This document shows positions 1 through 59,402 of a stretch of DNA of 64,000 bases, piece by piece. A program made the translations under genes and the position numbers. Below the pieces are notes generated by a model, which worked only from the letters and a program-made list of their open reading frames with translations, did not search any database and was not told where the DNA came from. This DNA comes from Botryllus schlosseri (Eukaryota): assembly GCA_051294905.1 (NCBI GenBank), contig CM119380.1, positions 14,756,001 through 14,820,000 of the forward strand, in the 5' to 3' direction. The stretch's first letter is position 1. Each line of letters begins with the position of its first letter.

Positions 1-314
1 TTTGAAATAGGCAAGTTATAACTATGTTGTCCGGTCACCATGTCACAAGTAGATTTATGCCACTTGTCATCAAAAGCATCATCTCCAGTAACCCATTTTT
101 CCACAGATACTCCACAGCAGTAACATCTTACTCTATCTTGAAATCCTGTCCAATAGAAACCAGCAGCGGCTAGATAACTCGGTATCACAGGAGTTTCTTT
201 CGGAAAATGTTTGAACGTTGCAAGTCTGTAATGTTCAACCCGGTGATCTCCAGGTGGAATATAAATGCAATTATGTCCAGGAGGATCACAATCTCTTTTC
301 ATCAGAATGCCCAT
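1..314 (-). CDS. iap: BIR-domain inhibitor-of-apoptosis-like protein, 3'-truncated by the window edge
   Basis: Manual translation from ATG at 314: MGILMKRDCDPPGHNCIYIPPGDHRVEHYRLATFKHFPKETPVIPSYLAAAGFYWTGFQDRVRCYCCGVSVEKWVTGDDAFDDKWHKSTCDMV... The motifs RLxTF..FP, LAxAGFY..G..D.V.C..C and W..H..C match a BIR domain. The frame is open to position 1. Confidence 0.9.
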   Translation of the reverse strand, partial: MGILMKRDCDPPGHNCIYIPPGDHRVEHYRLATFKHFPKETPVIPSYLAAAGFYWTGFQDRVRCYCCGVSVEKWVTGDDAFDDKWHKSTCDMVTGQHSYNLPIS

Positions 315-554
315 AGTTTCAATTCGGTCGTTTCTCGGTATAATTGCTTTCGATGGAACAGGCGTTCAATAATACAGATCAAAATGTCTAAATATAACCA
401 TATCAATCCAACATTCTAGTAATAATACATAAACATTCTGTTAAAAAAATATATCATTATATAAGATTTCTCGAGGTTCCAAATTAGCATTGGTTCGATA
501 AATTCCATGGATTAGGTGTGAAGTCATTATTTAATCGTCAATATGTAACAACAG

Positions 555-1214
555 TTAATGGAGATGTATGTCCAAAATATAGGAATTTTCCAGATATTGA
601 TTCATTGACTGGGCTTTCTTATCTACTTTCTTCGAGTATATGTATATATATGCATCCATAACGGAGGTATCAGAACTTAACAACATATAACCTTTTACTC
701 CTAGATTGGTTTGGCTGTGCCAAGTCCATTTGCAATTCGCATCTGTAACATAAGCCAGACTATTTGCACATACCAACAATCTTGTATGGCCCATTACTAC
801 TCCTCGTATCACTTCATATATTACTCGTCTCATACATAGGGGAGGTATTCTTCGGACAACTCCCATCAAGGTTTCCGTAATTATAGTCCATGTATCGTCA
901 TCGGGTCGTATTGTCTGTTTATTCCATACTATGAGTCGTTGTCTTGAGGAATCTTTCACAATGGCAGAATCTTGGGAGTCGTCAGAGTCCGTATTACTAG
1001 AAATTTCATCCTCCGGCGTTTCTCCATGGGGTTTCCTGTCGCCACATGGAAGTTGTCTTTTGTACCAATTATGTTCTTGTTCAAAAAAATTTTTCAACAT
1101 ATCCATCAGCAACTTTAGACATCCAGTATTTTTTCGCACGTCGATTTTATCTAGTTGATTCATCAATTTACAAAAAATAGCAGTATTATGATCCTGTACT
1201 TCAGATAGATACAT
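555..1214 (-). CDS. Hypothetical protein, novel family A copy 1 (219 aa from first ATG)
   Basis: Intact ORF. Shares RRVIYEVIRGVVM and W..QTNLGVKGY with the ORF at 4251-4907. Confidence 0.8.
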   Translation of the reverse strand: MYLSEVQDHNTAIFCKLMNQLDKIDVRKNTGCLKLLMDMLKNFFEQEHNWYKRQLPCGDRKPHGETPEDEISSNTDSDDSQDSAIVKDSSRQRLIVWNKQTIRPDDDTWTIITETLMGVVRRIPPLCMRRVIYEVIRGVVMGHTRLLVCANSLAYVTDANCKWTWHSQTNLGVKGYMLLSSDTSVMDAYIYIYSKKVDKKAQSMNQYLENSYILDIHLH

Positions 1215-1490
1215 TTTATCCCTGCGAATATAACAATAATGTGCAATAACAATAAAAGATCCCAATTCAAGATTTCAATGCATCAAATCTCGCTATTAGA
1301 TATCATATAACATGTAATACATTCACTCACTATGATACAACAGTAATATAATCAACTCATATATGTACTTTAATAGAAACATTTCATAGGTTTTTTAAAC
1401 ATGTAGATTATCATACATGCCTCCATTGTTTTCCTAAAGATTCAAATCACTCATATCTGATGATATTGCACATAGTGACCAACATTGTTT

Positions 1491-2438
1491 TCAATGTTCC
1501 AATGTCCTAAAGTTAGGATCAAGAGCAATTATCTCTAAAAATAGTTGAAACCTTTCCTCCAAGGCCACCCTTCTTTTCCAAAGCCACTCCTGTAAGTAAT
1601 GAGGAATAAGTGATCTTGATACCCCATTCAGCCTTCTAATAGCAGCTTTAAAAAAATTCCAAGACACCTCGATCAATTGTGTATTTATGCCTTCTGGGGT
1701 TACAAATTCGCGATCATGATTAACTATTGAATGTTTATAATTCATTCCCAGGTTTTCCAACTTGCGGTAGCTGGCGAATGAATCAGTCCATATAGTGGAT
1801 CCCTCTTTTACGTGTTTCATAATTATTTCTGATAATACAGAGGTTTTTCTCCCTTCTTCAGGTACCAATTCTGCAAACATTTCTCTCGTTTTCATATCTA
1901 TTCCAGCCAAAACCCAGCGTTGGCGTATTATTCTTCCACGATTAAATTTTCTTTTGGCCACAAACGTTTCATCAATTTGAATTACATGTGATTTACCTTG
2001 TGATATTCCCCCTATTAGGGTACCTCTTCTTTCCATTTCCCCAGAGCATATCTTACGAAGTTTCTTGGTCCAATTCACCATTGTTCTCTTGCTGACGTGT
2101 GCTTCAAAAGCTATTTGTCGTTGAGATACATCTATGGTCCAAAGATAAATCATCATTACAAGTTGGGTGAGTCTTATTTTACTTCCTTCAAATAGCGATC
2201 TTTTCCTTATGGACGTGGTAGTCCTGCACTTTGAAACCGGACACCTCCATCTATATCCATCCATAGTTCTTTTGCATTTTTCTTCTTTCATTTGTTGTCC
2301 ACAATTAAAACATGTTGCCTTTTGAACAAGGAGTTGCCGTGATCGCAGAAACTTTATACATTTTCGTTCACTTGATATTATACCACATCGAGCAAGATTG
2401 AATAGATTTTTTCTTTTTCTGGGTTCTTTAGTCTTCAT
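1491..2438 (-). CDS. Merlin/IS1595(ISXO2)-like DDE transposase 1
   Basis: N-terminal Zn ribbon (CFNC...RWRCP..C), SIRKRSLFE, an HTH-like region, and catalytic motifs IQIDET / WTDSFASY / NTQLIEVSW. Intact 315 aa. Confidence 0.9.
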   Translation of the reverse strand: MKTKEPRKRKNLFNLARCGIISSERKCIKFLRSRQLLVQKATCFNCGQQMKEEKCKRTMDGYRWRCPVSKCRTTTSIRKRSLFEGSKIRLTQLVMMIYLWTIDVSQRQIAFEAHVSKRTMVNWTKKLRKICSGEMERRGTLIGGISQGKSHVIQIDETFVAKRKFNRGRIIRQRWVLAGIDMKTREMFAELVPEEGRKTSVLSEIIMKHVKEGSTIWTDSFASYRKLENLGMNYKHSIVNHDREFVTPEGINTQLIEVSWNFFKAAIRRLNGVSRSLIPHYLQEWLWKRRVALEERFQLFLEIIALDPNFRTLEH

Positions 2439-2506
2439 ATTTATTTAGAACTTTATTGTCTTTTCAAAAGTAGTTTCTGTATATACAAACATTGGAAAGT
2501 TAAATT

Positions 2507-3013
2507 TCATGCAGGTATTTTCAAAACCATAAATTGACAATCGGCTTCTTTTATGGTTATTTCCTGCGTCTTCGCCCACGAGTAGATTTGAGCTTCCGGA
2601 AAGATTATCCACATTATGAGATCTCTTTCAGAGTCTCCTTTTTTTAGAAATTCCCGCATTTCAGGATTTACTCTTTTTAAAATTGTTACCCAGTTTATGC
2701 AGATTTCTGCAAAAGCCATTTGTATAGGTTTTTCAGGGTAAATGCTTCCTGTATAAATTTCTTCCCACTCATCTTCAACCAGATGTTTCCCAGGCCAATG
2801 ATTATTACATGTAGTAAGACCATACTTTTGCTTCCAATATTGCAGCCGTGGATTTAATTCGTCGTACATTATGTCACATAAATGATCCGTTAATGTATAT
2901 GTTGTTAACAGAAACTTCAGCGACTTTAATCCTTTGTCTATTAGTGTTTCTTTTTGGGGTATCCATATCAAATGTTGTATTTCCGGATCATCACAACGCA
3001 ATCCCAAACACAT
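2507..3013 (-). CDS. Hypothetical protein, novel family B copy 1
   Basis: Intact 168 aa ORF. MCLGLRC, NPRLQYWKQ and WIIFPEAQI match MCYGLLC, NPRVQYWQQ and YVLYPEAII in 6286-7146. Confidence 0.8.
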   Translation of the reverse strand: MCLGLRCDDPEIQHLIWIPQKETLIDKGLKSLKFLLTTYTLTDHLCDIMYDELNPRLQYWKQKYGLTTCNNHWPGKHLVEDEWEEIYTGSIYPEKPIQMAFAEICINWVTILKRVNPEMREFLKKGDSERDLIMWIIFPEAQIYSWAKTQEITIKEADCQFMVLKIPA

Positions 3014-3115
3014 TTTGATACTTTATTATGTTATACTATACAAAATATATAAGATCAGTTACCTATTGCCATGTTACAATACTGCACCGAATTTCAATAT
3101 TTATACTTAAGCATT

Positions 3116-4156
3116 TTACATTAGTCTAATAGTAACTAGCCAAACACTAGCGGCAAATGTACATTTTGAATGTATAGTCACGGGATTGGAAAAACTTTTC
3201 ATTACATCATAATATAATCTTGATTGTTTACGAACATAGGGTCTTTTGGTAGACGTTCCATTATTATATCCATTTAATTTTAAAACCTCCAAATATGGCA
3301 ATTTTCTCCGTAGAGAATCACTCAGAAATTGAACATGATTATAACTAAGGTCAATAGTATGTAAATATTTGAACGATGTGTTGGAGGACAGAGAAAAATA
3401 TTGCAAGTTATTATAATACAACGTTAATCTCTCTAAATTACACAAAGATTCAAGTATTGTCATATCAAATTCCACCAGTTTATTTTCATCCAGGTTTAAA
3501 GTTTCCAGTTTACTCAGTCCTTTAAACGCCCCTTCTTCTATAGCGCTTATTGCGTTTCTTGATAAGTCTAGTATTCTTAAACGACGTAAATGAATGAATG
3601 TTCCGTTCTTTAGTTTCTTTATGACATTGTTGTCCAAATATAGTCTTTTTAATTTTTCCATGCCTGCAAATTTTGATCCTTCTATTTCTGCCAGCAAATT
3701 ACTGCTCAAGTACAAACTTTCCAGTTGGTGTAAGCCTGCAAAGCTTTCTTTTTCAATTCGTGTGATGTAGTTTCGTATCAAATTTATCTCCCTAAGCTTT
3801 TCGTTTTTGCAGAAGACTCCTCCTGGTATGGTTTGGATTTTATTCCACCCACAATGCAACACCTCTACGTCTTTATACTTTTCCAATTGTCCTTTGGTTA
3901 TTTCCCGTAGGCAGCTGTCGTTGATGAATATCTTTACTGTGTTCCGGCAAGATTTTGCCAGGTATATCTTGTCAGGATCTGGAATCCTTGTATAACTCGA
4001 ATGATCACACCAAAGTACCAAATTGCTTCCTTGCATGCATTCCGGGTATAACATAGTTCGTCTTTCATTCTTTGTACATTTCTTTTGTTCTATTGTTTCC
4101 GGATAAATAGCATAACACGTGCCCAGCCATAATACTAGTAGTTCCACTCGGTTCAT
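3116..4156 (-). CDS. Signal-peptide leucine-rich-repeat protein (secreted or surface)
   Basis: Hydrophobic N-terminus MNRVELLVLWLGTCYA, a Cys-containing cap, and about 8-9 repeats of LxxLxLxxNxIxxIxxxxF. No canonical LRRCT cap, transmembrane (TM) helix plus tail, or TIR signalling domain. Single ORF. Confidence 0.88.
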   Translation of the reverse strand: MNRVELLVLWLGTCYAIYPETIEQKKCTKNERRTMLYPECMQGSNLVLWCDHSSYTRIPDPDKIYLAKSCRNTVKIFINDSCLREITKGQLEKYKDVEVLHCGWNKIQTIPGGVFCKNEKLREINLIRNYITRIEKESFAGLHQLESLYLSSNLLAEIEGSKFAGMEKLKRLYLDNNVIKKLKNGTFIHLRRLRILDLSRNAISAIEEGAFKGLSKLETLNLDENKLVEFDMTILESLCNLERLTLYYNNLQYFSLSSNTSFKYLHTIDLSYNHVQFLSDSLRRKLPYLEVLKLNGYNNGTSTKRPYVRKQSRLYYDVMKSFSNPVTIHSKCTFAASVWLVTIRLM

Positions 4157-4250
4157 TTTACTTATGAATTAGATAATTCACTTTGTTATTTTACTCCTTT
4201 GAAAAAGGTTTTTTGTAAGTCAAAATCTTATTTACATTCGTTGTCATTAC

Positions 4251-4907
4251 TCATAATTGTTCCGGTATTATAGAGTCAATGTTCACACTTTCCCCTCCGT
4301 AGGGGTAAGGGTGTATTTCTATACGCCTTATCCTTTTTGTTCGCCAATGTATTGAACTTGAATAGCCTTTTATGCCCAAATTATTCTGACAATTCCATTG
4401 TTCCATATGCGGCGGATCTTTACAAATTTCTCTCTCCTGGTACACGTCCTTTGTTATATTAGTGTTTGTAAGTTTCATCACCATTCCTCTAATTAATTCA
4501 TACAACATGACTCTTCTTCCCAAAGAGGTGTATTCCTTTGCTCTTATTTCAAATATCTCATCTACAACATGGTTGAATTGTTCAAGAATTTCTTCGGTTA
4601 ATTCCTCATCTAGGGCTACCTCTTCTAGGCCATTGTCTGTTTGTTTAACCCAATCAACTCGGTCCGTAAGCAATTCCCATATTGTTTCTTTAAACTGGTA
4701 TCTCTCATATTCGCTGTTATATTCTTTAAGATTCAATAGATCCAATTCGTCATATACATCGTACAAAAGACACCAATTTGTTGGATCGTAACCTTCAATA
4801 TAATCAAAATCTAGCATTCTTTTTTTTCCTTTCTGCATCAAAATATACAGATTTTTTTCAAACAAAATAGAAATTTCGCACAATTTACCATTTTCATGTA
4901 TACTCAT
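4251..4907 (-). CDS. Hypothetical protein, novel family A copy 2
   Basis: Intact 218 aa ORF. RRVMLYELIRGMVM and W..QNNLGIKGY are shared with 555-1214. Confidence 0.8.
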   Translation of the reverse strand: MSIHENGKLCEISILFEKNLYILMQKGKKRMLDFDYIEGYDPTNWCLLYDVYDELDLLNLKEYNSEYERYQFKETIWELLTDRVDWVKQTDNGLEEVALDEELTEEILEQFNHVVDEIFEIRAKEYTSLGRRVMLYELIRGMVMKLTNTNITKDVYQEREICKDPPHMEQWNCQNNLGIKGYSSSIHWRTKRIRRIEIHPYPYGGESVNIDSIIPEQL

Positions 4908-5249
4908 ATAAACTCATGTATACTCCATACTCGTTAAGACATTTATCAATTCATTAATCACCCAATACTTATTAGGCAATAAATCTCTCCCCCCCACAAG
5001 GGATTTAATTATTTTGTAATTTTCTATTTTCTGGTTTTTATTTATATACTTTTTTTTCTCATTAAGATTTTATCTCGTATATAGTTTTTATCCTTCGGTT
5101 TAGGTAATAATTTTATCAATTTTTATGATCTATAAACATAATCCGACATTTTATTTTTTTGAAGATTTTTTTAGTGGGGAAAGTTATACAACATATCAAC
5201 TTAAACAATAATAAAAAGTGATATTACTCATCATCCCTGCCTTCCCTTT

Positions 5250-6165: not shown

Positions 6166-6285
6166 GGCTTGTCTAATAGGCTAGCCCTAAAAGTCCAAAT
6201 CAACCTATCCCATAACAAATATTACGTCTCTGACGTGTTTCCGAAGACAATTTCTAAATCAAACTAATAGTAGCTTATTTTCAAA

Positions 6286-7146
6286 TCAGCCCATTTTACC
6301 ACTAAAGGCAGCATGGGGTCCGTCTACACTGGGCCTCCGTAAAACTATCATTCGGGTTGGAGCCTCTAGTCTGTTTGGAAACCTACTGTCTCTACTGGTC
6401 GAAGACTCAATATTAAACAACGATGTAGTTTCCGAATTGGTATTTTTGACTATTTGTTTGTCACCCTCTTTTTTTAGCGAGTTTTCAAAGATTGATTCCG
6501 ACACTTGGTCAACCGGTAGAATAAAAACACCTCCCACATAACCAAACGTACTCGTGGACCCGTATGTAAATCTCCACTGTTCTAGATTTCCCCCAAATAG
6601 GAATTCAAATTCTGCATCCATCCTGCACCTCGTAAAACAAAATGTTTGTATGTTTTTTGCCCCCCGATATTGTTGCAACAGGAGAGCTATGGCGGTTATT
6701 ATCGCTTCCGGATATAACACATAAAGTACTATATGTCCTTTATCTATTTCGGTGTTTTGATCTAGTCCTTTGTGCATACTACAAGCTTCTTTTAAATAGT
6801 CATGGCATAATGTCATAAGTTCCAAAATCTGCCCGGTATTCTTGAAGTACGGTCTTACGTGCCTCATAAGGTAACATTGTTTACATTCACCATTCCCAAC
6901 AGGGTGAAAAAGCTTTCCTATTTTTGTCCAGCCCTCCTTGTTGTACATACATTGTTGCCAATATTGCACCCTTGGATTGTCCCGCTCACAAGTGCCGAAC
7001 AAGAGGCTCATCAAACGATCCCGAACCGGCGCAGTTTTTATGGTTTCCATTACCATCTGCTGCCTTTGAGTAAGAGTGAACTGCATTGCCCACTCGTAGA
7101 CAACCTTGTGATCCGTATTAGGGTTGCACAATAGCCCGTAGCACAT
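6286..7146 (-). CDS. Hypothetical protein, novel family B copy 2
   Basis: Intact 286 aa ORF with ATG at 7146 and TATAAATA about 25-30 nt upstream. Paralogous to 2507-3013 with a longer C-terminus. Confidence 0.8.
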   Translation of the reverse strand: MCYGLLCNPNTDHKVVYEWAMQFTLTQRQQMVMETIKTAPVRDRLMSLLFGTCERDNPRVQYWQQCMYNKEGWTKIGKLFHPVGNGECKQCYLMRHVRPYFKNTGQILELMTLCHDYLKEACSMHKGLDQNTEIDKGHIVLYVLYPEAIITAIALLLQQYRGAKNIQTFCFTRCRMDAEFEFLFGGNLEQWRFTYGSTSTFGYVGGVFILPVDQVSESIFENSLKKEGDKQIVKNTNSETTSLFNIESSTSRDSRFPNRLEAPTRMIVLRRPSVDGPHAAFSGKMG

Positions 7147-9390: not shown

Positions 9391-9777
9391 AATTGTACCA
9401 ACAAAGAGATGTATTGTAGTTGCTGAGCCCTATATATACCAAGTCTGTGGAAATGTAATAGGTCTATGTGTCATAAATTTTCCAAGTATACCACAGGAAG
9501 TTTTTATTTTTCTTCGTGAGTTAGCACCACAGTACGCAGTGATTATGATACTCGCCTTATTTTGATTCATCACTCTTTTTTTACATATGTCTCACCAGAA
9601 TATAACCATGATACCCATCATCCTAAACTCAATCTCGATGTTCATCTTTATTGCTACATTATCCGTATTTGCGCCATGAGACCACGCTCAAAGCGAAAAC
9701 TTTCTATCAATTATAATTAGGTGACTTAAAATTGTAGGTGATTGTACAAATTTTTTGTCCTGTTTCTTCATCTAGTA

Positions 9778-10170
9778 CAGAGGTCTCAAACTCAAACGTG
9801 CTTGCGGGCCATTTTTCTAGATTAGACGACGCCGCGGGCCGCAGCATTTATAGAGGTATTCTATGTCTTTCCAAGTAGGCCTTATTTTGGCGGGAATGAA
9901 TTTTTCTATTGAGAGTGAGTCGATCCAGCAGACTGACAGTAACCACACATCGCCAAAATATGATTTAGATTTGTATAAATTTTGGCCTGGCACGAAAAAA
10001 ATCATCATATTTATAACTATTTAAAGAGAATTGTTGTTGTACTTGATATAAATTAACTATAAGATATAGACACCATATGAACGGACAAACGTATGATGCC
10101 ATCATAAAAGTTATCACATTATAATTTTCAGCTACTATGAATATTTTGAATCCAACAGACCGATAATAGA
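9778..10170 (+). mobile_element. hAT-type MITE fragment (CAGAGGTCTCAAACTC end)
   Basis: Alignable over about 350 bp with the copy starting at 63539. The second TIR was not found. Confidence 0.7.
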
Positions 10171-10299
10171 GTCTGATCTGATTATTGTAATTCCTATCAC
10201 GATTCGGGTATACTTATGAGAAGTAGGCTATTAATCTCATGGCCAAATATCTTCAAATATAGGAGCAGAAAAAAATATAAATATAATATAAATAAACAA

Positions 10300-11460
10300 T
10301 GAATGTGTCCTAGTGATTGAAATGTCGGAACGCCGAACGTCCTATTGCTGTTACATCGTTGGGGCGTACCACTACGGTACTCGGTACCTTTAAGTGGCCT
10401 TAATAACATGATTTAGCGACCAAAGATGTAACTAACAGAACGCCAATGTCATAACCATACTTGCTCAGTTAGCGAAATACCAAGCTGCGACCTTCTGATC
10501 TGTTACAAGTTCTTTTATTGTCAAACAATTGTACCAATTGGCCATTAAATACCAGATCTTGTGACGGAACATCTCCTACCTAACGCACTTATCTTTCGGG
10601 TTTAATATCAAATTATAGGGATCTATGCCTCAATTGATCAATTCATAGCCCTCCTTCAGTACCGTTATTACTATGTCCAACACTACATCCCTCAGTTCGT
10701 GCTCTCTTACCCCAACTTTAATTTTCTTAAATACATACATGGAGTATGGCTATGTTATTTAACTGTCGTATGGCCTGTATTCCATCTCTAATACACCCTT
10801 AATGAAACTATTACTCATGCCTCCTTCAAATACTAAGTCACCAACCTACATTCTAAACTCGGTTTACTTCCTTATAATCATGAACCGCCGGTATATGAGA
10901 TAGAGCCTCAGTGCATGGCGCATGCCATTCTTTTTTTGTTAACAATTCCGAATTTGCGTAATAGATCACAATCAGATTTGGATGGACATGTTTGATCAAT
11001 GTTAACGCGAAAATATTCCAAAAATTAGTCCTAATTTTTTGTTCGTGACTTTTGTGTGCATGCCCATTGAGAGAGTACTGACTAGATATGCGCTTACTAC
11101 TTAGCTAATTAGTTACTGTATAATTCTAGATATTTAGCTGTCTGAATCTTTCAATTAATAAGCTACGTCATTCATACATCAACAATTCTTGTTCTTGGTC
11201 CATTGCCAACATGAGTACTGCGTAAAAGGCTGCGGGTTGTACCACAATTTCTCCCACGTTTGCTAATTCAATCTAACTTGAACATTACCTTAGGCGCTCA
11301 TTCATTTACCAACCTTGATATCAAGGCTAAAAGCGACATAAACTAAGTGGTAGCAGGTCACGCGCCATTTTCCAAGCACGACTTTACGCCATTTTGATTA
11401 CATAAATTCTTGCTTGGCTCAAACCAGCCGCGTGGTGGCGCCGACAACCCACTGATTCAA
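10300..11460 (-). pseudogene. Heavily decayed BEL/Pao LTR-retrotransposon pol (RT and RNase H/peptidase A17 region); may extend to about 12400
   Basis: Ordered relic motifs across stops and frameshifts: RHHAA (LPHHAV), NGVKSCLENG (NGxSLNxxLxxGP), VAFSLDIK...QVRL (VAxxxDIxKxFxQV), KGVL...PYD (KRxVLSxxxxxYDPLG), VAAWYF, SLVAKS..PLK (AKSRVAPLK). Confidence 0.65.
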
Positions 11461-14400
11461 TATCACGCCTTTACTTATTTTAATTTGTAAACTTATTTCC
11501 CAATTTGCATAGCTTTGCTACCAAATGCAACAATTCAAATTATCTTGTAGTCACTTAAATTGGCAAGGTCCCGCCGACCATTCTTATTCATACTGGCCCT
11601 TTTCAGAAAACGCAAAAACCAACCCGCTCTGCTTCATGCTACACCACTGTGCATTGTTATGTAATTATACTCTAGACTACTAGGTCACTATTGTTGATAC
11701 GTTATCAATAAATTATCTTTTCGCACCCAATCTGTCCCAAATAATTACTTCTGCAAACTACAATCCCAAAATGCACATCTTGCTACCTCAGAAATCAATG
11801 ACTTTCCTTAATTATCATATCTTTTGTTTGTTCTATGATACTACAAACCTCGCACTATTGCTCAACACTAATAAAACAGCGTTTAAGTTGCTGAATTATC
11901 TACGATTCATGTGTCGCCTCCAATAATCAAAACTTACTTTTGTAAATGCAGACTCGCAACAATAGTTACTTTTAAATAAAATACCTGTGCTACATACATG
12001 CTAATGACTATCATCGAAAACAAACATCTATCACTACCCAAGTTTCACTTAGTAATGTTTTGTAATTTACCTACTTACTTGAGTGTTTTTTAAATCTGGC
12101 CAAATTTACTTTCATTTTTAAAACTACATATCTAGTTTGACCATCACTATTAATGGCACAAACCCGATACCTTGCTCTTAATTTCACTTACTTGTAACTG
12201 TCTGACATTTGAGGCGTGATATGAGAAAATAACATTCTCATCTATTTCAGCTTAGTGCTCCTAGATTAATTTAATCCCAAGGTGACTAGCGCAAAAAAAT
12301 CCTATAACTGCCTCAAGCAATTGTTCCATCATTTCAAATATTTTGGAGAGACCGGCTAACGGAGGCAGCTATCATTACACCAATTACCATACCCGCACGA
12401 CAATTTCTAGTGAGTTTTAATCATATTCAGACAATTAGAACACACTTGTAGCAGAAGAGATATTGTAGAGATCTCCAACGCACTAGTTTTGAAATGGGCG
12501 TCCCCAATAGGGCACGAGCAAGCGCATTTTTTCTTGTTTAGTAATACAGTATGCAAGAAGGTTTTGAAAACAGTGCGATCTATCAAAGCCGAGATATGTC
12601 ATGGCTTACAGTAGATTTACAATTTTATAGCCCTTATGTGTTATAACATACACCATTGTTAGTAATCAATAATATTCGCCTCGCACTGCAATGGGAGTTA
12701 GTCCATCTCAGGAAGTCATTCTATGCGGCTAGGCATTGCTCCATAGCATGCTTGGCGTCGTATTGTTGCATCAGGTTTTAGCCAAGACGACCTGAGTTGT
12801 CCGCGAAAGCACAATTTAGTTTTGGAATTATAGACCAGAGTTCTTCAAACGGAGTTACTGCATAATATGATATATATCAAAACTTGCAACATAGTGTAAC
12901 CTTCGAACGGTATTTACAGGGACGTACCAAATCCGTAATACAATGAACTGAAGACCAGCTTTCGCAAATGTAGGTTTATGGTTCAGCGTGAGCTAGAACA
13001 TAGGCGAGCGAGCAAGCGAGCAACGTGGTATTATGTTATTTTTTAGGGTGATACTTTATACCCTTTGGTCGAGAGAGATATTTCACCTACTTATTTACTC
13101 GTCGGCGATAAACCAACAGTTTTGTTTGGTTTTCAAAAATATAATTAATTTTTGAGGGGCATACCGCTTCAGCACAGGCCTTTTGAGGCAATACCTTGCA
13201 CCCGTGTTGGGCTCAATTCCCTTCGAGTCACGAGTCATTCCGAGTCCTGGCAGACACTCAATCAAGTCAAGCCAAGTCAAGTTACGAGAAAGATCACAAT
13301 TTTGAGTCAAACCGGATTTCAGCATCTATATTGAATTAGCTGACAAATATGCAGATAACTATACATGCACCCAGATGCTGTACCAGTCACACGCAAGTAA
13401 AATACGCGAGCAATTGTAAAGCTAAATACTACAGTCAGGCATTGTCGACCAAAATATAGAAAGATACGCACTGCACAACGTAAATATTGAGCCGTCTAAT
13501 GAGACAAAAAGATGTTGTTATTCACAATAGTCCTCTATAATTTCCACGGCAGCGTCAGCCATGATCGTTTCATTCGCGGTTAATTTATTTATGACTTAAC
13601 ACAACAATTCGAGTATACGCAAGCTACAGTGATTTATTCAACACCGTTTATTTTGCGACTTGATATTGGCTTGTAAATTCTGCTTCGAGACACGAGTCAA
13701 TACATATTTCCCAAACAACCCGAGTCATCCCAAAACTGTTTCTTACCCTACATTAGTAATACGCAATGTGTCAGTCATAGTAAATAAAGGACCGCAGTCA
13801 GCCAGAATTAACCTAGCTTTTATATCGAAATTGATCGGTTTTATTCAGACTATCTATTTCTTAATCCAGTCTCACCTATGCACTTGAGACGACGATAGAA
13901 TGTTCACAGCGGCCTACGATTTAAGGTTCTTGATCACTCTTGAAGCCTATACCCCAAGATGAATTTGCGCGCTTTGCAATGTAAATCTGATTGTCAGAAT
14001 TGTTAAGTACTGAATAGTGTTGTCGAGCATGTGCGGATGGGTTATTTTGTGAATAGCAACAATAATATTGGTCTTTTAAATTTCCATATCCAGTCGCCGC
14101 TCTTATAATCAGCGTTTGTGCTAGTCCCAGTTACAAAGAAACATCAGGTAATGTTCAGTATATAGGTCATCATTGTGTCAATTAGAACATACTATGACTT
14201 GAGCTACCCTTGATTTTATTATATTCTTTTATTCTTCATATATACGAATGCGCATGACTAAAATCACCCCAAATAGCGTTCCATCTTGTCAGGCATTCTA
14301 GAGGGACCCGTTAGTTGGGGTGGCTCCCGTCACGCAAATTTAGATACCATGTCCATATTAGTAATGTTTTACCTAAAAAACCTTCGAGAACGGTTCAGTA

Positions 14401-15733
14401 CAGGAAGCTATCTATACTACTCTTCCTTGTTATGGCAAACGCTCGTTATTGAATTATTTTACCGCAATGTTTAGTCGTCGAGGCGAGTTGTAGTTACAAA
14501 TACAGTTAATTTCTGGCACTTAGAAGTTAGTGTTTCTCAACCGAGATACACGTAATTTTTGGGAGATACCAGAATTGGCAAGAGATATGTCTTTCCAATG
14601 GGATATATAGAGCTGTATCAGGTCTGGATTACCCTGAATCGGCGCCCAACCATTGATAAGGTAGTTATATATACAATATTGTCTCCAATGTAATACTGTA
14701 TTCCACTTGTTTGCGATGTTACCAGTATTTCTAGTTGTCAGCCTAGCCCAATGGTCTAGTTAGATGTTATAAAGTCCATACTGTTTCATGTTACATGTCA
14801 TTTTATACGATAGATCAGATTTACCTGTAGCGGTATTACCTGCCTATGTAAATAAATGCCATATTGTAGTGAATGTAGCAATTGACGTGACATAGCCATT
14901 CAGGGTCAAGACACCTTCCATACCATATATATTCAGACCGAGTGGTCATAGTGGTTAACCAATGAAACTTCCTGGAATTAACTAGATACACCAATAATGC
15001 TGTATTGTTTAAATTTTAATAAATTAATAATCCATTTAAGCATACACACTCACCTTAGTTTATTTTTATAATTCGAAATAGAGGATTGAATAAATCACCA
15101 TGATTCACGACAGCATTGGCTGTAAGCTTAAACTTCTTATGTTCATGTCACCATGTCGGATGGATGCCCCATAAGCAGCACTATCATGGAATGATTAGTT
15201 GCTCTCATGGATCACATAAACTTTGCGTGATAAATCCAAACATATGCTATATACCACAATCTTTGTCTGCATTTGATTATTTGATGACTTGAAATTGGCT
15301 CACTAATTTTACTCCGAATTTAATTCATAAACCGGTATACCGAATCAATTCAGATATTAGTCAGTTGCTTGAGGCCAGTGACTCGAGAGACCATGGGCTT
15401 GTATATAGTATCACCCAATACAGCGATTATTGGCATTTCTTGTAGTCTAAATGCTACTGTTAACCCTGTGCAATGCACGGTACAATATGTGTGGCGGCTC
15501 TGATACTTAATAGGTTGGTGATTGTGCTATTGTCGATTGAAATTACCGCTTTTACAACAGTTACTCATCATCTAATACTGTTATATTTAAGTTATGTAAA
15601 TAACAGCTACAGTAGCATAACGCGTCGAAGGCAGGCTGATACTATAAACCTTAAAATTCCAGATCCACTGTCATTATTTGCCTCAAATGATTGTATTTGC
15701 AAACGTCTTTAGCAGGGATTATCCATACTTCTT

Positions 15734-16096
15734 TTAGACACAGGTATCATTATGAGTGAGTGAGTGTTTGGCGTGTCGTGATTCTATTTCGTGGTATATT
15801 TTGCGCTTATATCCGTATATCCTGCTATCCAACGCAATCCTTATCATCCTAACCGTGAAGCACAAGCGTTTATACTTTAGTAGCGCAAAATGAATCAACT
15901 TCTGACAATAGGTCAGGTCGAAGCAAGAGTCAGATTGTATTCCAAAATACGTGCTATTAGTAAAATTATTGATCCCATACGCATGTATATTACTAAAAAT
16001 CAATGTAATATCGTTTGTATTGTTAGTCACGTGATAAGGATAGATTTTAAGGACGTATTCTCTTAAGCGATGTGCTCCTTGTGTTGTTTTTGTCAT
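15734..16096 (-). pseudogene. Possible ORF fragment with several N-X-S/T sites; function unknown
   Basis: 120 aa ATG ORF containing NNT, NFT, NST and NDT. Downstream frames are broken. No family recognised. Confidence 0.25.
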
Positions 16097-16159
16097 TTAA
16101 TTCTACTGTATAGCAGCGTTGGAATCTAGTCACTTCCTCCGGCACTGCAGCATAGCCTT

Positions 16160-16402
16160 GTCAAAAACTCACTTTAATTTTACGGACCAGTTATTAGCGT
16201 TCATATTGAATTAGAATCGAGTGTTTAGAATTTGTTTTGTATAGTAAGGATGTCAGTGTAGCGAGTGATTATAATATAAGTCAAAAACTCACTTTAATTT
16301 TACGGACCAGTTATTAGCGTTCATATTGAATTAGAATCGAGTGTTTAGAATTTGTTTTGTATAGTAAGGATGTCAGTGTAGCGAGTGATTATAATATAAG
16401 TC
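16160..16402. repeat. Perfect 120-bp tandem duplication (2 copies)
   Basis: The unit gtcaaaaactcacttt...gattataatataa starts at 16160 and again at 16280; the copies are identical by eye. Confidence 0.95.
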
Positions 16403-17040
16403 TCATATCATAGCTATAAGTACCACGTTGATTTTCTCTCTCCCCTTTATAGAAAGGTGAGCATTAGTATAATTTTATATTATCGAAATTTTACTAGGTG
16501 CCATGACAAGAAATAGTCCACACATTGTAATAATAGCTTTCAACTTTTTAGTAACATTTGGTATAACTGATACAGTCTCCACGCGACAATATAAGATTGG
16601 CCGTCTGTACCGTGACGACCCAAGTTATACTCAGGTCTGTTATCTTGACATACCAAAACTTGTTGAGTGTCAACCAGAGCTGGTACAGAAACACGACCCT
16701 CGATTCACCAGTCACCTCCAGTTGACGCACATTCTAACTTGAGTCAATTCCAAGTCAATCGACTCTCAATGCGACCCAAGTCAAGCCAAGCCACTCGTTC
16801 CCTGTAGGCGAACCGCTCCAGGTCAAACCACTCGAAAAAGTCGACCCGAGTCACCTCAACACTGGTGTCAACCTATATATGGAGAGAAAAAAAAAAAAAA
16901 TTTTCTTTCCAACTGCTACCAGCACTCAACTCCCCTAACACCTTACAGTTTGGTGTGGAGTCAACTGATTTTTCCAGTCCTGCGCTCCGCGTTTTATCCA
17001 GTTTTGAGCGGAAGATCGTTAACGCGCATGCACCCCCCCA

Positions 17041-17385
17041 TCACCACGAGCAATGTGCTATTTTCGTAAAGTAGGGGTTGGCGTCCTTCCGATCATTCAT
17101 CAAGCAAATTTTTGTCGCTATCCTTTGTACTCCGGCATGATTAAGCCCCCCATTACAGACAAATTTCACCCTTTTGCTACAGTTAAAGATTTCCTGTTCG
17201 TCAATTACCCACTGTAGCGCTTCCGTTCCCACCATTAATTGTGGCCTTATTGTGCAAGATTTTTGCAATGGCGTGATCAACCCATCAATTGGGGTCGTAT
17301 TTTGCCGTTTTTGCTAAATTAAGTTTTTCCTATTCGTCAATATGTCATTGCAACATGTACAAAAATTACGCCATCCTGCTTCCAT
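17041..17385 (-). pseudogene. Cys-containing ORF interrupted by one in-frame TAG
   Basis: MEAGWRNFCTCCNDILTNRKNLI*QKRQNTTPIDGLITPLQKSC... continues in frame into the track ORF at 17041-17280. Confidence 0.35.
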
Positions 17386-17512
17386 ATTTACTTACTATTG
17401 CATTACTTAATCCTTCCAAATGTAATGCTTCCATATTTACTTACTATTGCAATACTTAATCCTTCCATATGTAATGCTTCCATATTTACTTACTATTGCA
17501 TTACTTAATCCT
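17378..17512. repeat. 49-bp tandem repeat, about 2.75 copies
   Basis: The unit gcttccatatttacttactattgcattacttaatccttcca(a/t)atgtaat starts at 17378, 17427 and 17476. Confidence 0.95.
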
Positions 17513-17808
17513 GATTTGGCTTAGCAATACCATCCAAAATTTCGCAATTACGTATTTCGCAAGAATAGTCGTTGCATAAGCATCGTTAACACCGCGAATT
17601 TGCCTCGTACGTTCTTGAACCCCGCCTACTTTTAGGCTTCCATAGGCAAATACAGCATGATTTTTTTAAACTATGTTATTTCAACGAAATTAAATTTAGG
17701 TCTTTGGATAATTTCACACGAATTCTAAACCGCGCAAATGGACCGAACACACCACACAACAACACTCACTTATATCTTTACAAAATTTCAGTGATTATTC
17801 CACAATAC

Positions 17809-21279: not shown

Positions 21280-21365
21280 ATTATTATAAATTAGTTAGTA
21301 TATCTGTGGACTTATGAAAAAATTAAATTAATAAAAGTAAAATCCTTTAAATATATATGCGTGCA

Positions 21366-23882
21366 CTACATTTTTGTCGATTTGGTTGTTTTAACGGGGG
21401 TCGATACCGATGATATGTACATTGTCAACTGAGTATTCGTGTTCCGCCGTTGTACCTTAGGTTTTAACTTAGGACAGCAAAGACTGCTATAACGACAGAA
21501 ACAAAACAAGATGATCCCGGCCCCTAATATCAAAATTACTGGAATCAGAACAGACCCCAAGCCAGAAAAAATTCCGTTCACTCCCTTACTGAATATTCCT
21601 CCGACCGCACCTAGTCCTTCTTGTAGTAGATTTCCTGTACTCTCTCCTACAGATTTTATCAAGCTTTCGGCACCGTGTGTCATGTCTTCTATCGTTTGGC
21701 CCAAGTTTTCCATAAATTTTTCTCCTCCCACGAATTCGAAAGGCTTCACTGTAATATTCTCATATCGCCAATCAGAAATGTTCATGTACACACTCTTGTT
21801 CAGATCTTCTCTCCAAACTTGCAAACCCAAATCCACATTCTGTTGGGTTTGATCTATATTGATACGATTGGCACGTAGTTCCACTCCGATGTCATTCGTC
21901 TCATTGATGTAAGCGTCTCTATAGGCTGTTAATTGCTGAGCATGCTCTTTTATCCGTAACGTTCCTTGCCGGATTTTCGTGAGATATACCTTGCTGGAGT
22001 CAAATATTAACTTTCCAGTCAAATTAGCCAATTCGTCCAAAACCAATCGGTCGATGGCTAATTCGGCATCACTCATTTCCTTATAGTTTTGAAAAGAGGT
22101 CAAAGAAGCTGTTGCTTGTCGTATTATCATTTGTCGATTTCTTTCTATGTACTTTTCCATTAGTACAAGTCGTTTATCTGTCAGTGATGTCCTTACTTCC
22201 ATGGCAGCGATCGTTTGATCCAGTTTTTGTTGTTGTGCTATTTGAAGTAACGAGAGCTCGTTAATCTTTCTCCCTAGTGCAGTGGACCTCTGTGTGGCCT
22301 GTATCATTCTATTATTGATCTGTTGGCTAAGGTTCACCGTCTCTTCATGTAACTGGGAGGAAACTGTCGCAACGACGGCGATTGTGGATATTACGGCAAA
22401 CACAAGACATATTAGTCCAGACAGAAACCTTTTACGTCTTCTCCGCGCACCCCTTTTGGTACCAGCTCTCGATGCTATTTCTCCCTTAATTTCTATCGGG
22501 CCTCCCGGGAAACGTGGTCGGTTTAGCTCCGGATCAAAATGAACATGGTCCCAAAAGGCTGCCTTTAAAACGGGTCCACCCACTGGGTCGCGACACAAAT
22601 CCTGGTTATGTGATATTCTATTTTTACATGCTTCATCCGATGCAGTAAGAGAGGGGAAGTGTTTCCACATGGGCCTGGGAAAAGGTATCCATGTTGATAT
22701 AGATGCCTTAAACCTAGTCGGCACACCATCAAAAAGGTTATTCCACCTCATGCCCTGATTGCCGCGATTAGCATACACACTGTGATCCAAATTTGGAAAA
22801 GACGGTTGTATCCATTTTACTCTAGGAGGGAAATTTGTCGTTGGTAGATCACCCCATATAGTGGTATTCATTCCAGGCCAGAAATTGCACGAATGGGCTA
22901 TTACCCCACCATCAGGCCAGAAGTGCTCAAACCAGTACTGATTAATCCATCCCCCCTGGGCCCGGCATGGAATGAACTTATTGCGCATATACGGCCATGT
23001 ACTTATTGTAGTCATTACTATTTCTTGGATGATTATATCTGCCTTATTTGGTTCCAGAGCAGAAATCACTCCTCTAAAATTACACCTTGTACAGATTCCT
23101 TTTCTGACCCCCTTTACCCTCCAAGAGTGGTATTGTTGCCAAAAAACACTATGGGAGGCATAATCTTTATCTACTAGATGCCAGCATTGTGTAAAACTAT
23201 TGCTACTGGCATTATACTTATTTAATTCACTTAATTTTTCTTTGTCCCCGTCTCTCATTGGCTCTTGAAGACATGAGGCTTCAACAGCTGAATAACTTTC
23301 GAATAGTCGTATCATAATCAATTTAAATTTGGTAAGAGCAAACATGGAGTAATTCCTGCCAAGGTCATGATACCAGTAATAGTCCCCATTCCAGAACCAG
23401 CGAATCCTATAATACCCTATTGGACGTATGAACATGTTTGTTTGTTTAAGAACATCATAGGAAATATTGGGCGTGATCTGGCCCAGGCGCCGTTGACAGA
23501 GACAGGTGCGTTCAAATTCTTGTACACTTGTCCAATATCTTCCATGTGGAAACGCCATTTGTTGTAATGAAAAACGCTCAGCTACTACGTAACCAAATGA
23601 CTTGCTGTAAAATAGCTCAGGCCGTCTATATACATGTCGCTCCGCCGTTTTGTTGAAAATGCTCATCAAGTGATAGTCCTCCCATTGTGTATCATTTAGA
23701 GTGATCCATTCTTCAGGCAGGGGTCCCCGTAGTTCCCCTAGCGTCCCCTGAGTGAAAGACCGTGCCCTATTTGTTACAGGATCTGCAAGTCCGTGCATGC
23801 CTTTCGCCGCCGTATGCAGCACCAAATCAGACGTACAAATGATACCAACAAGGATAGACAGAGAATAAGGAAGGATGTCCAT
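21366..23882 (-). CDS. Class I viral fusion-type envelope glycoprotein (838 aa from first ATG)
   Basis: Signal peptide MDILPYSLSILVGIIC. Multibasic site RRRRKR (22428-22445) is followed directly by the hydrophobic peptide FLSGLICLVFAVISTIAVVATV. Then long heptad-like helices, a Gly-rich membrane-proximal segment, TM VLIPVILILGAGIILF, and a Cys-cluster tail FCFC..LCC. Confidence 0.88.
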   Translation of the reverse strand: MDILPYSLSILVGIICTSDLVLHTAAKGMHGLADPVTNRARSFTQGTLGELRGPLPEEWITLNDTQWEDYHLMSIFNKTAERHVYRRPELFYSKSFGYVVAERFSLQQMAFPHGRYWTSVQEFERTCLCQRRLGQITPNISYDVLKQTNMFIRPIGYYRIRWFWNGDYYWYHDLGRNYSMFALTKFKLIMIRLFESYSAVEASCLQEPMRDGDKEKLSELNKYNASSNSFTQCWHLVDKDYASHSVFWQQYHSWRVKGVRKGICTRCNFRGVISALEPNKADIIIQEIVMTTISTWPYMRNKFIPCRAQGGWINQYWFEHFWPDGGVIAHSCNFWPGMNTTIWGDLPTTNFPPRVKWIQPSFPNLDHSVYANRGNQGMRWNNLFDGVPTRFKASISTWIPFPRPMWKHFPSLTASDEACKNRISHNQDLCRDPVGGPVLKAAFWDHVHFDPELNRPRFPGGPIEIKGEIASRAGTKRGARRRRKRFLSGLICLVFAVISTIAVVATVSSQLHEETVNLSQQINNRMIQATQRSTALGRKINELSLLQIAQQQKLDQTIAAMEVRTSLTDKRLVLMEKYIERNRQMIIRQATASLTSFQNYKEMSDAELAIDRLVLDELANLTGKLIFDSSKVYLTKIRQGTLRIKEHAQQLTAYRDAYINETNDIGVELRANRINIDQTQQNVDLGLQVWREDLNKSVYMNISDWRYENITVKPFEFVGGEKFMENLGQTIEDMTHGAESLIKSVGESTGNLLQEGLGAVGGIFSKGVNGIFSGLGSVLIPVILILGAGIILFCFCRYSSLCCPKLKPKVQRRNTNTQLTMYISSVSTPVKTTKSTKM

Positions 23883-24011
23883 GGTACAGACAGTGGTGGT
23901 TCTCGCCACGTCATAAACTAAATATAATCGCGCACTAAACCTAGACTACCGTCTGTAAAAACACAAAATAACAGATGTCGTCATTTCCGTATTGGAACCT
24001 TATAACGGGGT

Positions 24012-24977
24012 TCACAAATGTGGTAATACAGGAGGCCCATCAAATTTGTCAAGATTATACCGTGGATCATTGTGTATGGTGCGCAGGAGTGCCAAGAATC
24101 GGTCAGTCTTTTGATGTTGACGTTTCCACAAAAACTCCCCTACGTAGTCGGCCAAAAGATGACGTGCTAGACCACGAGATCTATGTAAATGATATTTAAG
24201 CTGGCCCCAGGCCCCCTCGATTTCATTAGTACAAAAAGCTGTCCGAGGGTCCTTAAACCAACGGGAGTGGTCCACTACACCGTGTATATAACCCTTCCCC
24301 CAGCTCTCTATGCCCTTGTAGGAAGGATAGGCATCGGTTAGAATCGTGGACCCCTCTGTCACATTTTCTACTATGAGTTTTCGAAATACTTCAGCAGTTC
24401 TGTCAGAAGTTATTTCAATGAACATTTCTCCGGTGGCTTTGTCTATTCCTCCAAACCCCCAAATGGCTTTAACAGCTGGTCCTTTACCAGAGGCAGCCCG
24501 GCGCTTGGCTAAGTGCGTTTCATCAATAATCACGCAACCGCCTTCCTTTCCCAAACGTCGCTTGTTCCTGTGAAATTCGGCCGTACACAGCTTTCGCAAT
24601 TTGCCGCACCAGGTAACCGTTGAACGCTGGCTAATCTCAGCTTCATGCGCGATTTGGGTTTGCAATGCGTCATGGGCCCAAAAGTAGAATAAAATCAACA
24701 ATTTGGGAAGTTCTACCTTACTTCCTGCGAATATCGAGTTTTTCCGTATAGTCGCCGTTGTATCACACGGATTGCATCGCCATCTAAATCCATCACCGCC
24801 AGTGGTCGTAATTTCTTCATTCATTATTTTTTTACATCGTTTGCATTTCATCCTTCGCACCAACAACCCGTGATTTCTCAGAAATAGCACACAATCTCGT
24901 GTTTTTAGTAGTGCACCCGATTCGACCAGACTCAACACATTGTATGTTCTTCCCAACGTATCTGCACAAGTAAACAA
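24012..24977 (-). CDS. Merlin/IS1595(ISXO2)-like DDE transposase 2 (start codon uncertain)
   Basis: CKRC...RWRC..C Zn ribbon, TIRKNSIF, and catalytic motifs IIDET / LTDAYPSY / TNEIEGAW. The first in-frame ATG is only at 24851. Confidence 0.88.
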   Translation of the reverse strand: MFTCADTLGRTYNVLSLVESGALLKTRDCVLFLRNHGLLVRRMKCKRCKKIMNEEITTTGGDGFRWRCNPCDTTATIRKNSIFAGSKVELPKLLILFYFWAHDALQTQIAHEAEISQRSTVTWCGKLRKLCTAEFHRNKRRLGKEGGCVIIDETHLAKRRAASGKGPAVKAIWGFGGIDKATGEMFIEITSDRTAEVFRKLIVENVTEGSTILTDAYPSYKGIESWGKGYIHGVVDHSRWFKDPRTAFCTNEIEGAWGQLKYHLHRSRGLARHLLADYVGEFLWKRQHQKTDRFLALLRTIHNDPRYNLDKFDGPPVLPHL

Positions 24978-25195
24978 GACAGTATGTGGCGTTCATCAAC
25001 TCTTTATCGTCCTTTGCGGGTCAACCCTTCTTTTTCTTGATACATCATATGTACTGATTCTCTCATATTTTAATCCCGTGTTAGTCATATGGCAGGGTCA
25101 TTTTTTTCACTTGTTCCTTACCAGACCTGGTGATTTTTTTACCCCTATTTCAATGTACATGTACAACACCTACTATCCTACAACACACCCACTTT

Positions 25196-25558
25196 ATGGT
25201 GCAACAACTATTGCCGCCTAGACCTCCGGGCACTTATTTCACAAGTACCGAGTATTTTATGAAGTTTTATGCAACTTTTTCAAACAATTGTCGCCCTGCG
25301 CGCGATTTCAAGTTTCCAAGTACCTTACTTATTGGGTACTCTTCCACCAAGATAAAATACGCAAGATTTATAGAAGTGGGCATATCGTCGTTGGCCATTA
25401 CCGCGCCACGACGCACGAAGACATATGAAGTTTTAGGTCATGTAACATGCGACTCCAAGAAGTGTGCCAGAACGATCGACAGCGAGAAAACCTTGGCCGA
25501 AAAGGACTGCCCTTACGCTGACCATAAACTTCGTTATGTATATACAAAATACATATAG
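25196..25558 (+). CDS. Hypothetical 120 aa protein divergent from transposase 2
   Basis: ATG ORF MVQQLLPPRPPGTYF...CDSKKC...DCPY. No long overlapping ORF on the other strand. No family recognised. Confidence 0.4.
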   Translation: MVQQLLPPRPPGTYFTSTEYFMKFYATFSNNCRPARDFKFPSTLLIGYSSTKIKYARFIEVGISSLAITAPRRTKTYEVLGHVTCDSKKCARTIDSEKTLAEKDCPYADHKLRYVYTKYI

Positions 25559-55498: not shown

Positions 55499-55575
55499 TA
55501 CCCCCCTGATCTCAAGATCAAAAGCAAACGAAATGAAACAAATCACTAAACAATGCAACAAACTATAATATAATG

Positions 55576-59387: not shown

Positions 59388-59402
59388 ATTGCCGCGATAG
59401 CT

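Follow-up and report, generated by a model that had tools for sequence, protein, structure and literature searches.

The 64,000-nt stretch of Botryllus schlosseri DNA analysed here (contig CM119380.1, positions 14,756,001 to 14,820,000 of the forward strand; hereafter the window, numbered from its first nucleotide) carries genes for two Merlin/IS1595-type DDE transposases, Tnp1 and Tnp2, together with a viral-type envelope gene (env) and several accessory genes. The reading we put forward, which we hold to be evenly balanced between right and wrong, is that positions 1 to 25251 of the minus strand represent the transposase-led end of an integrated, enveloped retrovirus-like element in which a Merlin-clade transposase replaces the integrase. 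It builds on a transposase-envelope gene order that recurs in related loci, on an element end common to five loci, and on the kinship of the envelope with a gag-pol lineage in which no integrase was found. The original prediction, made from the letters of the window alone, had proposed a virus-like mobile element with a Merlin-type transposase and the cargo of a large enveloped DNA virus, comparable to Teratorn. The first part is upheld by the recurring gene order, by signs of selection and by the shared 5´ end. The large double-stranded DNA (dsDNA) virus is not, since the envelope is of a family that goes with a gag-pol lineage, and in L003 and L021, two of the 22 related loci examined, gag-pol and the transposase-envelope unit form one continuous stretch.

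The genes lie, as had been proposed, in two dense, co-oriented blocks; block 1 (1-9390) and block 2 (17809-24977) are both on the minus strand. All open reading frames (ORFs) of at least 150 aa in the first 25 kb are on this strand, where they cover 78%, 39%, 0%, 44% and 97% of successive 5-kb bins, compared with 0% of the plus strand. Several ORFs in the program-made list begin with bacterial-type starts (TTG or GTG); a nearby ATG is available for all genes but one. All genes other than that for Tnp2 are uninterrupted.

The transposase-envelope unit and its outer end

Both transposases matched the Pfam domain PF12762 above the curated cut-off (E = 1.1e-16 for Tnp1 and 9.2e-10 for Tnp2), and they are 38% identical to each other. 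Residues D152, D215 and E254 of the catalytic triad (Tnp2 numbering) are invariant in seven aligned sequences, along with C45, C48, C68 and C71 of a CxxC..CxxC zinc finger, and the triad is invariant in a nine-sequence alignment too. These matches agree with the prediction of two catalytically intact Merlin/IS1595 transposases. An AlphaFold model of Tnp2 (predicted local distance difference test, pLDDT, 78.8) has an RNase-H-like core, and its best PDB matches were the N-terminal and catalytic-core domains of retroviral integrases (E = 4e-5), a result that any DDE enzyme might give, so many integrase entries exist. Searching PDB sequences with the transposase profile gave no match, and a scan of IMG/VR revealed no relatives of the transposase or of the envelope.

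The order transposase then env was found in the window and in L001, L003, L007, L010, L021 and L022, seven loci in which identity falls to 42% for the transposase and 27% for the envelope (Table 1). The unit is present in several marine-animal datasets, including a chromosome of Styela clava, and two of the loci (L003 and L022) come from one sequencing run, so that diverged lineages coexist. Tnp2 is 74-75% identical to the transposases of L007 and L022 and 53% identical to those of L001 and L003, while the nearest relatives of Tnp1 are those of L010 and Styela L021 (44%). The second glycoprotein gene of the window likewise has counterparts downstream of env, in L002 and L003. The ratio of nonsynonymous to synonymous substitution rates (dN/dS) was 0.12 and 0.095 for two transposase pairs, the first involving Tnp2, and 0.135 for the envelopes of L001 and L003, with dS saturated throughout; both genes are under strong purifying selection (dN/dS ~0.1). 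Collectively, these results support a virus-like mobile element of which the transposase is an authentic, conserved component and not a chance neighbour.

Ordinary Merlin transposons could in principle have come to lie beside an unrelated endogenous envelope and host genes, and Merlin-like genes without an envelope neighbour do occur in the same metagenome collections (L011-L017). Such a juxtaposition would not be expected to produce one gene order in seven deeply diverged loci. Short terminal inverted repeats (TIRs) of their own are lacking around Tnp1 and Tnp2, which are flanked by chance-level inverted repeats only, and in a neighbour-joining tree (calculated without support values) the envelope-linked transposases, Tnp1 included, form a single clade apart from the stand-alone Merlin-like genes. 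Because the adjacency is conserved, we regard chance juxtaposition as effectively refuted. The ORF downstream of the stand-alone Merlin-like gene in L011 was considered as an envelope gene and rejected, as it does not encode one.

The right limit of the element, predicted at 25558, is better placed at 25251. Nucleotide identity between the window and L007 is 73% through env, the Tnp2 gene and the 260-nt leader ahead of it, and stops abruptly at 25251; contig L022 starts exactly at the equivalent base. The equivalent point interrupts an unrelated ORF for a reverse transcriptase (RT) of the long interspersed nuclear element (LINE) type in L010, and in Styela L021 it lies 1.2 kb beyond a DDX1-like host gene. 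Conserved leader blocks are common to five loci, and the leader must be under constraint because its 73% identity to L007 persists despite a dS of ~1.6. It contains two copies of the motif GG-N5-GTGAA-N5-9-CCC, 132 nt apart, where 0.145 would be expected per window. The same pair is found in L007, and single copies stand at the equivalent place in L010, L021 and L022. We infer that the leader is a transposon-type end with putative paired subterminal binding sites. No inverted copy of the motif was detected in the window or in 180 kb of related loci, and given its absence from the window the other end of the element either is missing or lies to the left of position 1. The sequence of 8-10 nt that borders the one visible end on its outside does not recur in the window. 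Two candidates in this region were discarded: the ORF at 25130-25558(+) as an element gene, which is a chance ORF straddling the boundary, and the L010 RT as a third case of pol beside the transposase, which is the unrelated LINE-type RT interrupted by the element.

The class I fusogen of the original prediction corresponds to the env product, whose sequence has the full set of features of that architecture, namely a signal peptide, a cleavage site with a fusion peptide, helices and a membrane anchor. There are 12 glycosylation sequons, the hydrophobic stretch directly after the multibasic site is 29 residues long, two very long helices are predicted (496-629 and 649-704), and the anchor is C-terminal. 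Three homologues share the cleavage motif and the residues after it without change, and among 25 sequences R494 hardly varies. A word-indexed search of 5.8 billion proteins returned two relatives of the envelope, and 48 were found among 1.84 billion cluster representatives. The envelope profile (alignment A2) also matched influenza haemagglutinins weakly (E ~9e-4) over the cleavage site, fusion peptide and first HA2 helix, which may reflect a shared class I architecture or composition. The second envelope-type glycoprotein was likewise borne out: beside its mucin-like stalk and anchor, it has an N-terminal domain paralogous to that of the envelope (E = 2e-9).

Intact ORFs and strong purifying selection would also be seen if these were host genes, that is, a domesticated transposase and a syncytin-like captured envelope, possibly in an operon of the tunicate type and no longer mobile. 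Operons are known in tunicates and dense co-oriented genes are compatible with them; in addition, NCBI annotates the Styela homologue as an ordinary protein-coding gene. We nevertheless consider this explanation very improbable. The unit exists in several diverged lineages, two of them in one sequencing run, and decayed copies are found: env has two interruptions in L010 and one or more in L006, and the transposase is fragmented in both L015 and L018. Furthermore, the assembly break of L022 falls exactly at the element end, the L010 copy is inserted into a LINE ORF, and the unit is contiguous with gag-pol elsewhere.

Table 1. Features of the first 25 kb of the window, from the mapped end inwards, and gene order in related loci
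Feature	Position or locus	Strand	Evidence or remark
Conserved non-coding 5´ leader and terminus, ~260 nt	24978..25251	-	two direct copies of a ~23-nt motif (GG-N5-GTGAA-N7-CCC)
Tnp2, IS1595/Merlin-clade DDE transposase, 321 aa as listed	24012..24977	-	PF12762 E 9e-10
Envelope fusion glycoprotein, class I architecture (predicted), 847 aa	21366..23909	-	signal peptide, multibasic site and hydrophobic peptide, helices, membrane anchor
Second envelope-type glycoprotein, 1156 aa	17809..21279	-	N-terminal globular part, mucin-like S/T/P-rich stalk, membrane anchor
ORF-poor spacer between blocks, 8.4 kb	9391..17808	.	no ORF of at least 150 aa
Acidic Ser/Asp-rich ORF, 173 aa	8869..9390	-	internal 93-nt repeat
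ORF, 172 aa	7330..7848	-	Ser/Thr-rich tail
famB2	6286..7146	-	PF20886 E 6e-5
famA2	4251..4907	-	paralogue of famA1 (BLASTP E 9e-7)
Leucine-rich repeat protein, secreted or membrane, 346 aa	3116..4156	-	LRR_8 E 2.4e-40; N-terminal hydrophobic leader in translation
famB1, small protein, weak PWWP3A/B C-terminal-like domain	2507..3013	-	PF20886 E 0.004; paralogue of famB2, E 1e-4
Tnp1, IS1595/Merlin-clade DDE transposase, 315 aa	1491..2438	-	PF12762 E 1e-16; intact ORF
famA1, small protein	555..1265	-	paralogue of famA2, BLASTP E 9e-7; no Pfam match
IAP-like gene fragment, one BIR domain	1..314 (BIR 3-314)	-	PF00653 E 2.5e-16; ORF truncated by window start
Transposase (53% identical to Tnp2), then env	L001		
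Env (62%), then second glycoprotein homologue (42%)	L002		
Pol, transposase, env, second glycoprotein	L003		
Leader, transposase (74-75%), env	L007 and L022		
Transposase (42-45%), then env (27%)	L010		JGI metagenome
Transposase (42-44%), then intact 844-aa env	L021		Styela clava chromosome OZ123515.1

The gag-pol lineage of the envelope family

Distant relatives of the envelope are encoded directly downstream of pol in L004, L005, L008 and L009. The pol of this lineage comprises protease, RT, RNase H and a C-terminal Tpt1/KptA-like domain; a CCHC-type gag lies upstream, and accessory glycoprotein genes with a CUB domain lie between pol and env. Across the related loci, gag and pol (protease, RT, RNase H) were seen in L003, L004, L008, L009 and L021. 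No rve integrase (PF00665) was found in any pol of the lineage, and each pol ends in the Tpt1/KptA-like domain. Direct repeats that could be long terminal repeats (LTRs) were not found flanking the elements of the window, L008, L009 or L021, and no tyrosine recombinase was detected in the ORFs of L004, L008, L009 and L021 (Pfam, E 0.01-0.1), a search that distant ones could escape. Outside the transposase-linked units, the envelope family is thus the env of a gag-pol (RT/RNase H) lineage without retroviral integrase and LTRs.

This lineage also touches the transposase itself. A complete pol in L003 (RVT_1, RNase H, Tpt1-like) ends ~150 nt before the transposase gene, which thus occupies the position of an integrase gene; no leader motif is present there. 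In Styela L021 the order is transposase, env, a famB-like ORF (PF20886), a coiled-coil ORF, CCHC gag, protease and RT, the last being 57% identical to the L003 pol. An RT piece in L018 lies ~290 nt upstream of the decayed transposase.

The ends of pol were examined as well. The Tpt1/KptA-like domain was recognised in L003:2-1843, L004:6573-9305, L008:4206-7190 and L009:3480-6566 (Pfam E 3e-8 to 9e-4) and matched solved RNA 2´-phosphotransferases in a PDB sequence search (E = 4.5e-7). We know of no retroelement described with such a domain in its pol. The best PDB match of the RT part was the 'Enzymatic polyprotein' (8r0s, E = 3e-20), followed by retroviral and Ty3 RTs, a ranking that does not amount to a phylogeny. 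We take 'Enzymatic polyprotein' to be the caulimovirus name for this protein. Several further features of these loci were noted. In L004, inverted repeats of at least 4 kb that are 99% identical (1-3963 and 17910-21868) flank the gag-pol-env element within a contig of 1.29 Mb; these could be genuine terminal repeats, a palindrome of the host genome or an artefact of assembly. The CUB-domain proteins are encoded at L008:7242-9961 and L009:6865-9842, between pol and env, and there the fusion subunit and the N-terminal env domain have an ORF each. In Styela, a 14-nt unit repeated seven times in tandem (L021:15591-15728) immediately precedes the coiled-coil ORF found ahead of gag.

If a Merlin-clade transposase does replace the integrase, the RT of the lineage would make a DNA copy of the element, and the transposase would bind the motif pair at the element ends and insert this copy into the chromosome, thereby standing in for the missing integrase. 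The envelope pair would allow passage between cells, and the inhibitor of apoptosis (IAP), leucine-rich repeat (LRR), famA and famB genes of block 1 would be accessory cargo. In its general form, to which we give somewhat less than an even chance, the proposal is of an enveloped reverse-transcribing lineage in tunicates and other marine animals that never had, or lost, integrase and LTRs, integrates by means of an IS1595/Merlin transposase acting on ends with paired subterminal sites, and reached at least 25 kb by uptake of host anti-apoptotic and immune-type genes (IAP and LRR; E2 and TRAF in relatives). Only tentatively do we suppose that the window copy has its own gag-pol left of position 1, as in the Styela order, and we would sooner doubt this than the general form; otherwise the window copy would be a gag-pol-less derivative. 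Any core genes left of position 1 are more likely to be gag-pol than DNA-virus genes.

Several results weigh against the replacement of the integrase by the transposase in an enveloped retrovirus-like element. The alignment of further copies, suggested with the original prediction as a means of defining the termini, mapped a single end, at 25251, and disclosed no TIR, LTR or target-site duplication; repeat searches for TIRs and LTRs around each transposase, over the whole region and in the terminal 300 nt gave nothing beyond chance. Profiles of the lineage gag and pol found nothing in positions 1 to 26 kb of the window, and because the window is without gag and pol an RT-dependent life cycle is unsupported for this copy. 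The order of genes differs between L003, where pol precedes the transposase, and L021, where gag-pol follows env, a conflict that would have to be accounted for by tandem copies, by a permuted or circular form, or by recombination. In L006, an env relative shares a 13-kb array with genes for IAP, E2 and TRAF-like proteins, where no RT is seen. The envelope model reached intermediate confidence (pLDDT 59.8) and Foldseek found no match for it below E 0.05 in PDB and BFVD, the transposase tree has no support values, and Tnp2 is without an in-frame ATG ahead of its conserved N-terminal region. The gene may have a defective start codon, or its start may be supplied by splicing or trans-splicing. 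The L007 transposase, its closest relative, likewise has no in-frame ATG ahead of the conserved N-terminus, whereas that of L022 has one. At the beginning of the Tnp2 ORF, the window and L007 share a conserved run of mostly pyrimidines that terminates in AG.

Some of the same observations could be explained if the transposase-envelope(-glycoprotein) unit were an autonomous cut-and-paste Merlin derivative, independent of RT, whose env was captured from the retroelement lineage; the gag-pol contacts in L003, L018 and L021 would then be nested insertions or recombinants. The 5´ end is transposon-like, with the two subterminal motif copies, and lies 245-320 nt upstream of the transposase in five loci. 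Its flanks differ (a LINE ORF in L010, an intergenic position near the DDX1-like gene in L021, repeats in the window), the window has neither gag nor pol, and the RT fragment of L018 ends ~290 nt before the transposase, as insertion into pol would give. We still judge this explanation unlikely. No inverted end motif is present in the window or within 11 kb downstream in L021, the complete L003 pol ends only ~150 nt before a transposase that has no leader motif, and accident is an unlikely explanation for three separate contacts with the only pol lineage to share this env family.

Block 1, the spacer and the remainder of the window

The original prediction placed an IAP, an LRR protein and two novel gene families in the array. 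The LRR protein was readily verified, and so were the two families, in which the paralogies are real but weak (E = 9e-7 for famA and 1e-4 for famB). The famB2 product has a weak domain in common with that of L021 ORF 13894-14922 of Styela clava, which follows env (pairwise E = 0.003; the Styela ORF matches PF20886 at E 2.3e-6). The IAP was substantiated in part. A BIR domain is present and is 35% identical to the BIR-RING IAP of locus L006, and the ORF, cut by the window edge, is a single-BIR, IAP-like fragment and not a complete IAP. A regular expression for the BIR zinc motif had no match in 1-25 kb because the spacing is atypical and the ORF is cut; the domain was found by way of the L006 IAP and Pfam.

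Whether block 1 belongs to the same element as block 2 is, in our estimation, evenly poised. The blocks are on the same strand with no second end between them, famB provides a link to Styela, Tnp1 falls in the envelope-linked clade, and IAP and env occur in one array in L006. Against this, the blocks are separated by the 8.4-kb spacer with its host repeat, GC content is lower in block 1, and Tnp1 is internal and has no leader. The spacer contains short tandem repeats and a dispersed host repeat (9773-9895). Close to the second glycoprotein gene on its downstream side, at 16160-16402 and 17377-17523, we noted an exact 120-nt tandem duplication and three copies of a 49-nt unit. Profile searches for decayed transposase, gag or pol in the gaps at 4908-6285, 7849-8868 and 9391-17808 gave only noise.

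A co-oriented intronless array of at least 25 kb with IAP, LRR and multigene families is also what an integrated large enveloped dsDNA virus-like element would present, a Teratorn analogue with a Merlin-type transposase and with its core genes left of position 1. With no second end in the window, the element may be much larger than the part seen, and in L006 a 13-kb array with IAP, E2, TRAF/MATH and 973- and 346-aa ORFs surrounds the env relative, without RT. This explanation appears improbable to us, more so than a DNA transposon with a captured env. The Pfam search for DNA-virus hallmarks that the prediction had called for (polymerase B, capsid, terminase, packaging ATPase) found none in the window or the 22 related loci. 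Furthermore, the 973-aa L006 ORF has no PDB sequence match, no IMG/VR relatives of transposase or envelope exist among the sequences scanned, and the core replication genes seen beside this env family are always gag and RT. The L006 array (1-13173) is co-oriented and also includes a 172-aa ORF; its E2 protein is a ubiquitin-conjugating enzyme, its IAP has three BIR domains and a RING, the env relative is in pieces, a further BIR is present, and no transposase is visible.

In the remaining 39 kb of the window, ORFs of at least 150 aa are confined to an LTR retrotransposon at 55-59 kb, unrelated to the transposase-envelope unit. In this young element (55365-59536, minus strand), gag contains two CCHC knuckles, pol encodes protease, RT, RNase H and an rve integrase, and the 134-bp terminal repeats show 100% identity. 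Just beyond it is a 192-aa ORF with a SAP domain (59686-60264, plus strand; E = 9e-9). Many diverged repeat pairs (67-86% identical), ~4.1-4.7 kb apart or inverted, occupy 30000-55000, a pattern that points to large repeats of some age in the flanking host DNA, arrayed in tandem or as palindromes. Neither the Rfam scan nor the tRNA scan of the whole window gave a match.

Relation to known mobile elements and viruses

We found no published description of a Merlin/IS1595 transposase combined with a fusogen, envelope, RT or retrovirus-like element, in keeping with the suggestion in the original prediction that such a system was new, and an envelope element that pairs a Merlin-clade transposase with a gag-pol lineage appears to be undescribed. 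The analysis also brought to light a pol with an RNA 2´-phosphotransferase-like domain and an envelope protein family without a detectable relative among solved or predicted viral structures. Loci of this kind currently carry the annotation of ordinary "uncharacterized" host genes, Styela clava being an example, and escape transposon finders that rely on LTRs or TIRs. Through them, IAP and LRR genes of the host might pass into viral cargo in chordate relatives.

In gene content the lineage resembles envelope-carrying Ty3/gypsy elements such as the errantiviruses and Tor of Oikopleura, which reside in invertebrate genomes including those of tunicates and likewise have a CCHC gag, a pol with protease, RT and RNase H, and an env in which a furin site and a fusion peptide are present. 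Elements of this kind that were surveyed, tunicate ones among them, are LTR-flanked, carry an env of F or gB type and have an integrase (IN) region in pol; no transposase is mentioned (PMC13524379). The lineage described here differs in that its pol terminates with a Tpt1/KptA-like domain, searches for an rve domain and for LTRs were negative, and there is a transposase of the IS1595 type. Its env has a large N-terminal subunit and matches neither the baculovirus F Pfam family nor solved F or gB structures.

Other reverse-transcribing elements do without integrase and LTRs. DIRS-like retroelements combine a Ty3-like RT/RNase H with a different recombinase and have neither rve integrase nor LTRs, and the long inverted repeats of L004 recall them. 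No tyrosine recombinase was detected here; a DDE transposase is present instead, together with envelope genes and a Tpt1-like domain in place of a methyltransferase-like one in pol. The Caulimoviridae, which are pararetroviruses, resemble the lineage in having a CCHC capsid protein with protease-RT-RNase H and no integrase or LTRs, but they are plant viruses, non-enveloped and without a transposase.

Among elements that move as DNA, Merlin/IS1595 transposons share the PF12762 catalytic domain, the DDE triad and the N-terminal zinc finger. Classical Merlins are single-gene elements of 1-2 kb with short TIRs and 8-9-bp duplications. In the window, by contrast, the transposases have no TIRs of their own, viral glycoprotein genes follow, and a 260-nt leader holds two direct motif copies. 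Maverick/Polinton elements with captured fusogens in nematodes are likewise large mobile elements with a DDE integrase and a viral fusogen, and have been suggested to move between cells or species. Their protein-primed DNA polymerase, capsid proteins and rve-type integrase have no counterpart among the genes seen here.

A parallel in principle is Teratorn of medaka, in which a herpesvirus-like genome, with the core genes of a herpesvirus, is fused with a piggyBac transposon that brings its transposase and long TIRs. In both systems integration would be entrusted to a cut-and-paste DDE transposase, and envelope and accessory genes are carried along. They differ in that the transposase here is of the IS1595/Merlin type, no DNA-virus core gene was seen, and the replication genes of the relatives are gag and RT/RNase H. 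If our reading is true, a virus-like agent would have adopted a cut-and-paste transposase for a second time, independently of Teratorn, and such a swap would be possible in reverse-transcribing elements too. Retroelements are classified by how they insert, through an rve integrase, a tyrosine recombinase or an endonuclease; the use of a Merlin/IS1595 transposase would add a fourth solution and a new class.

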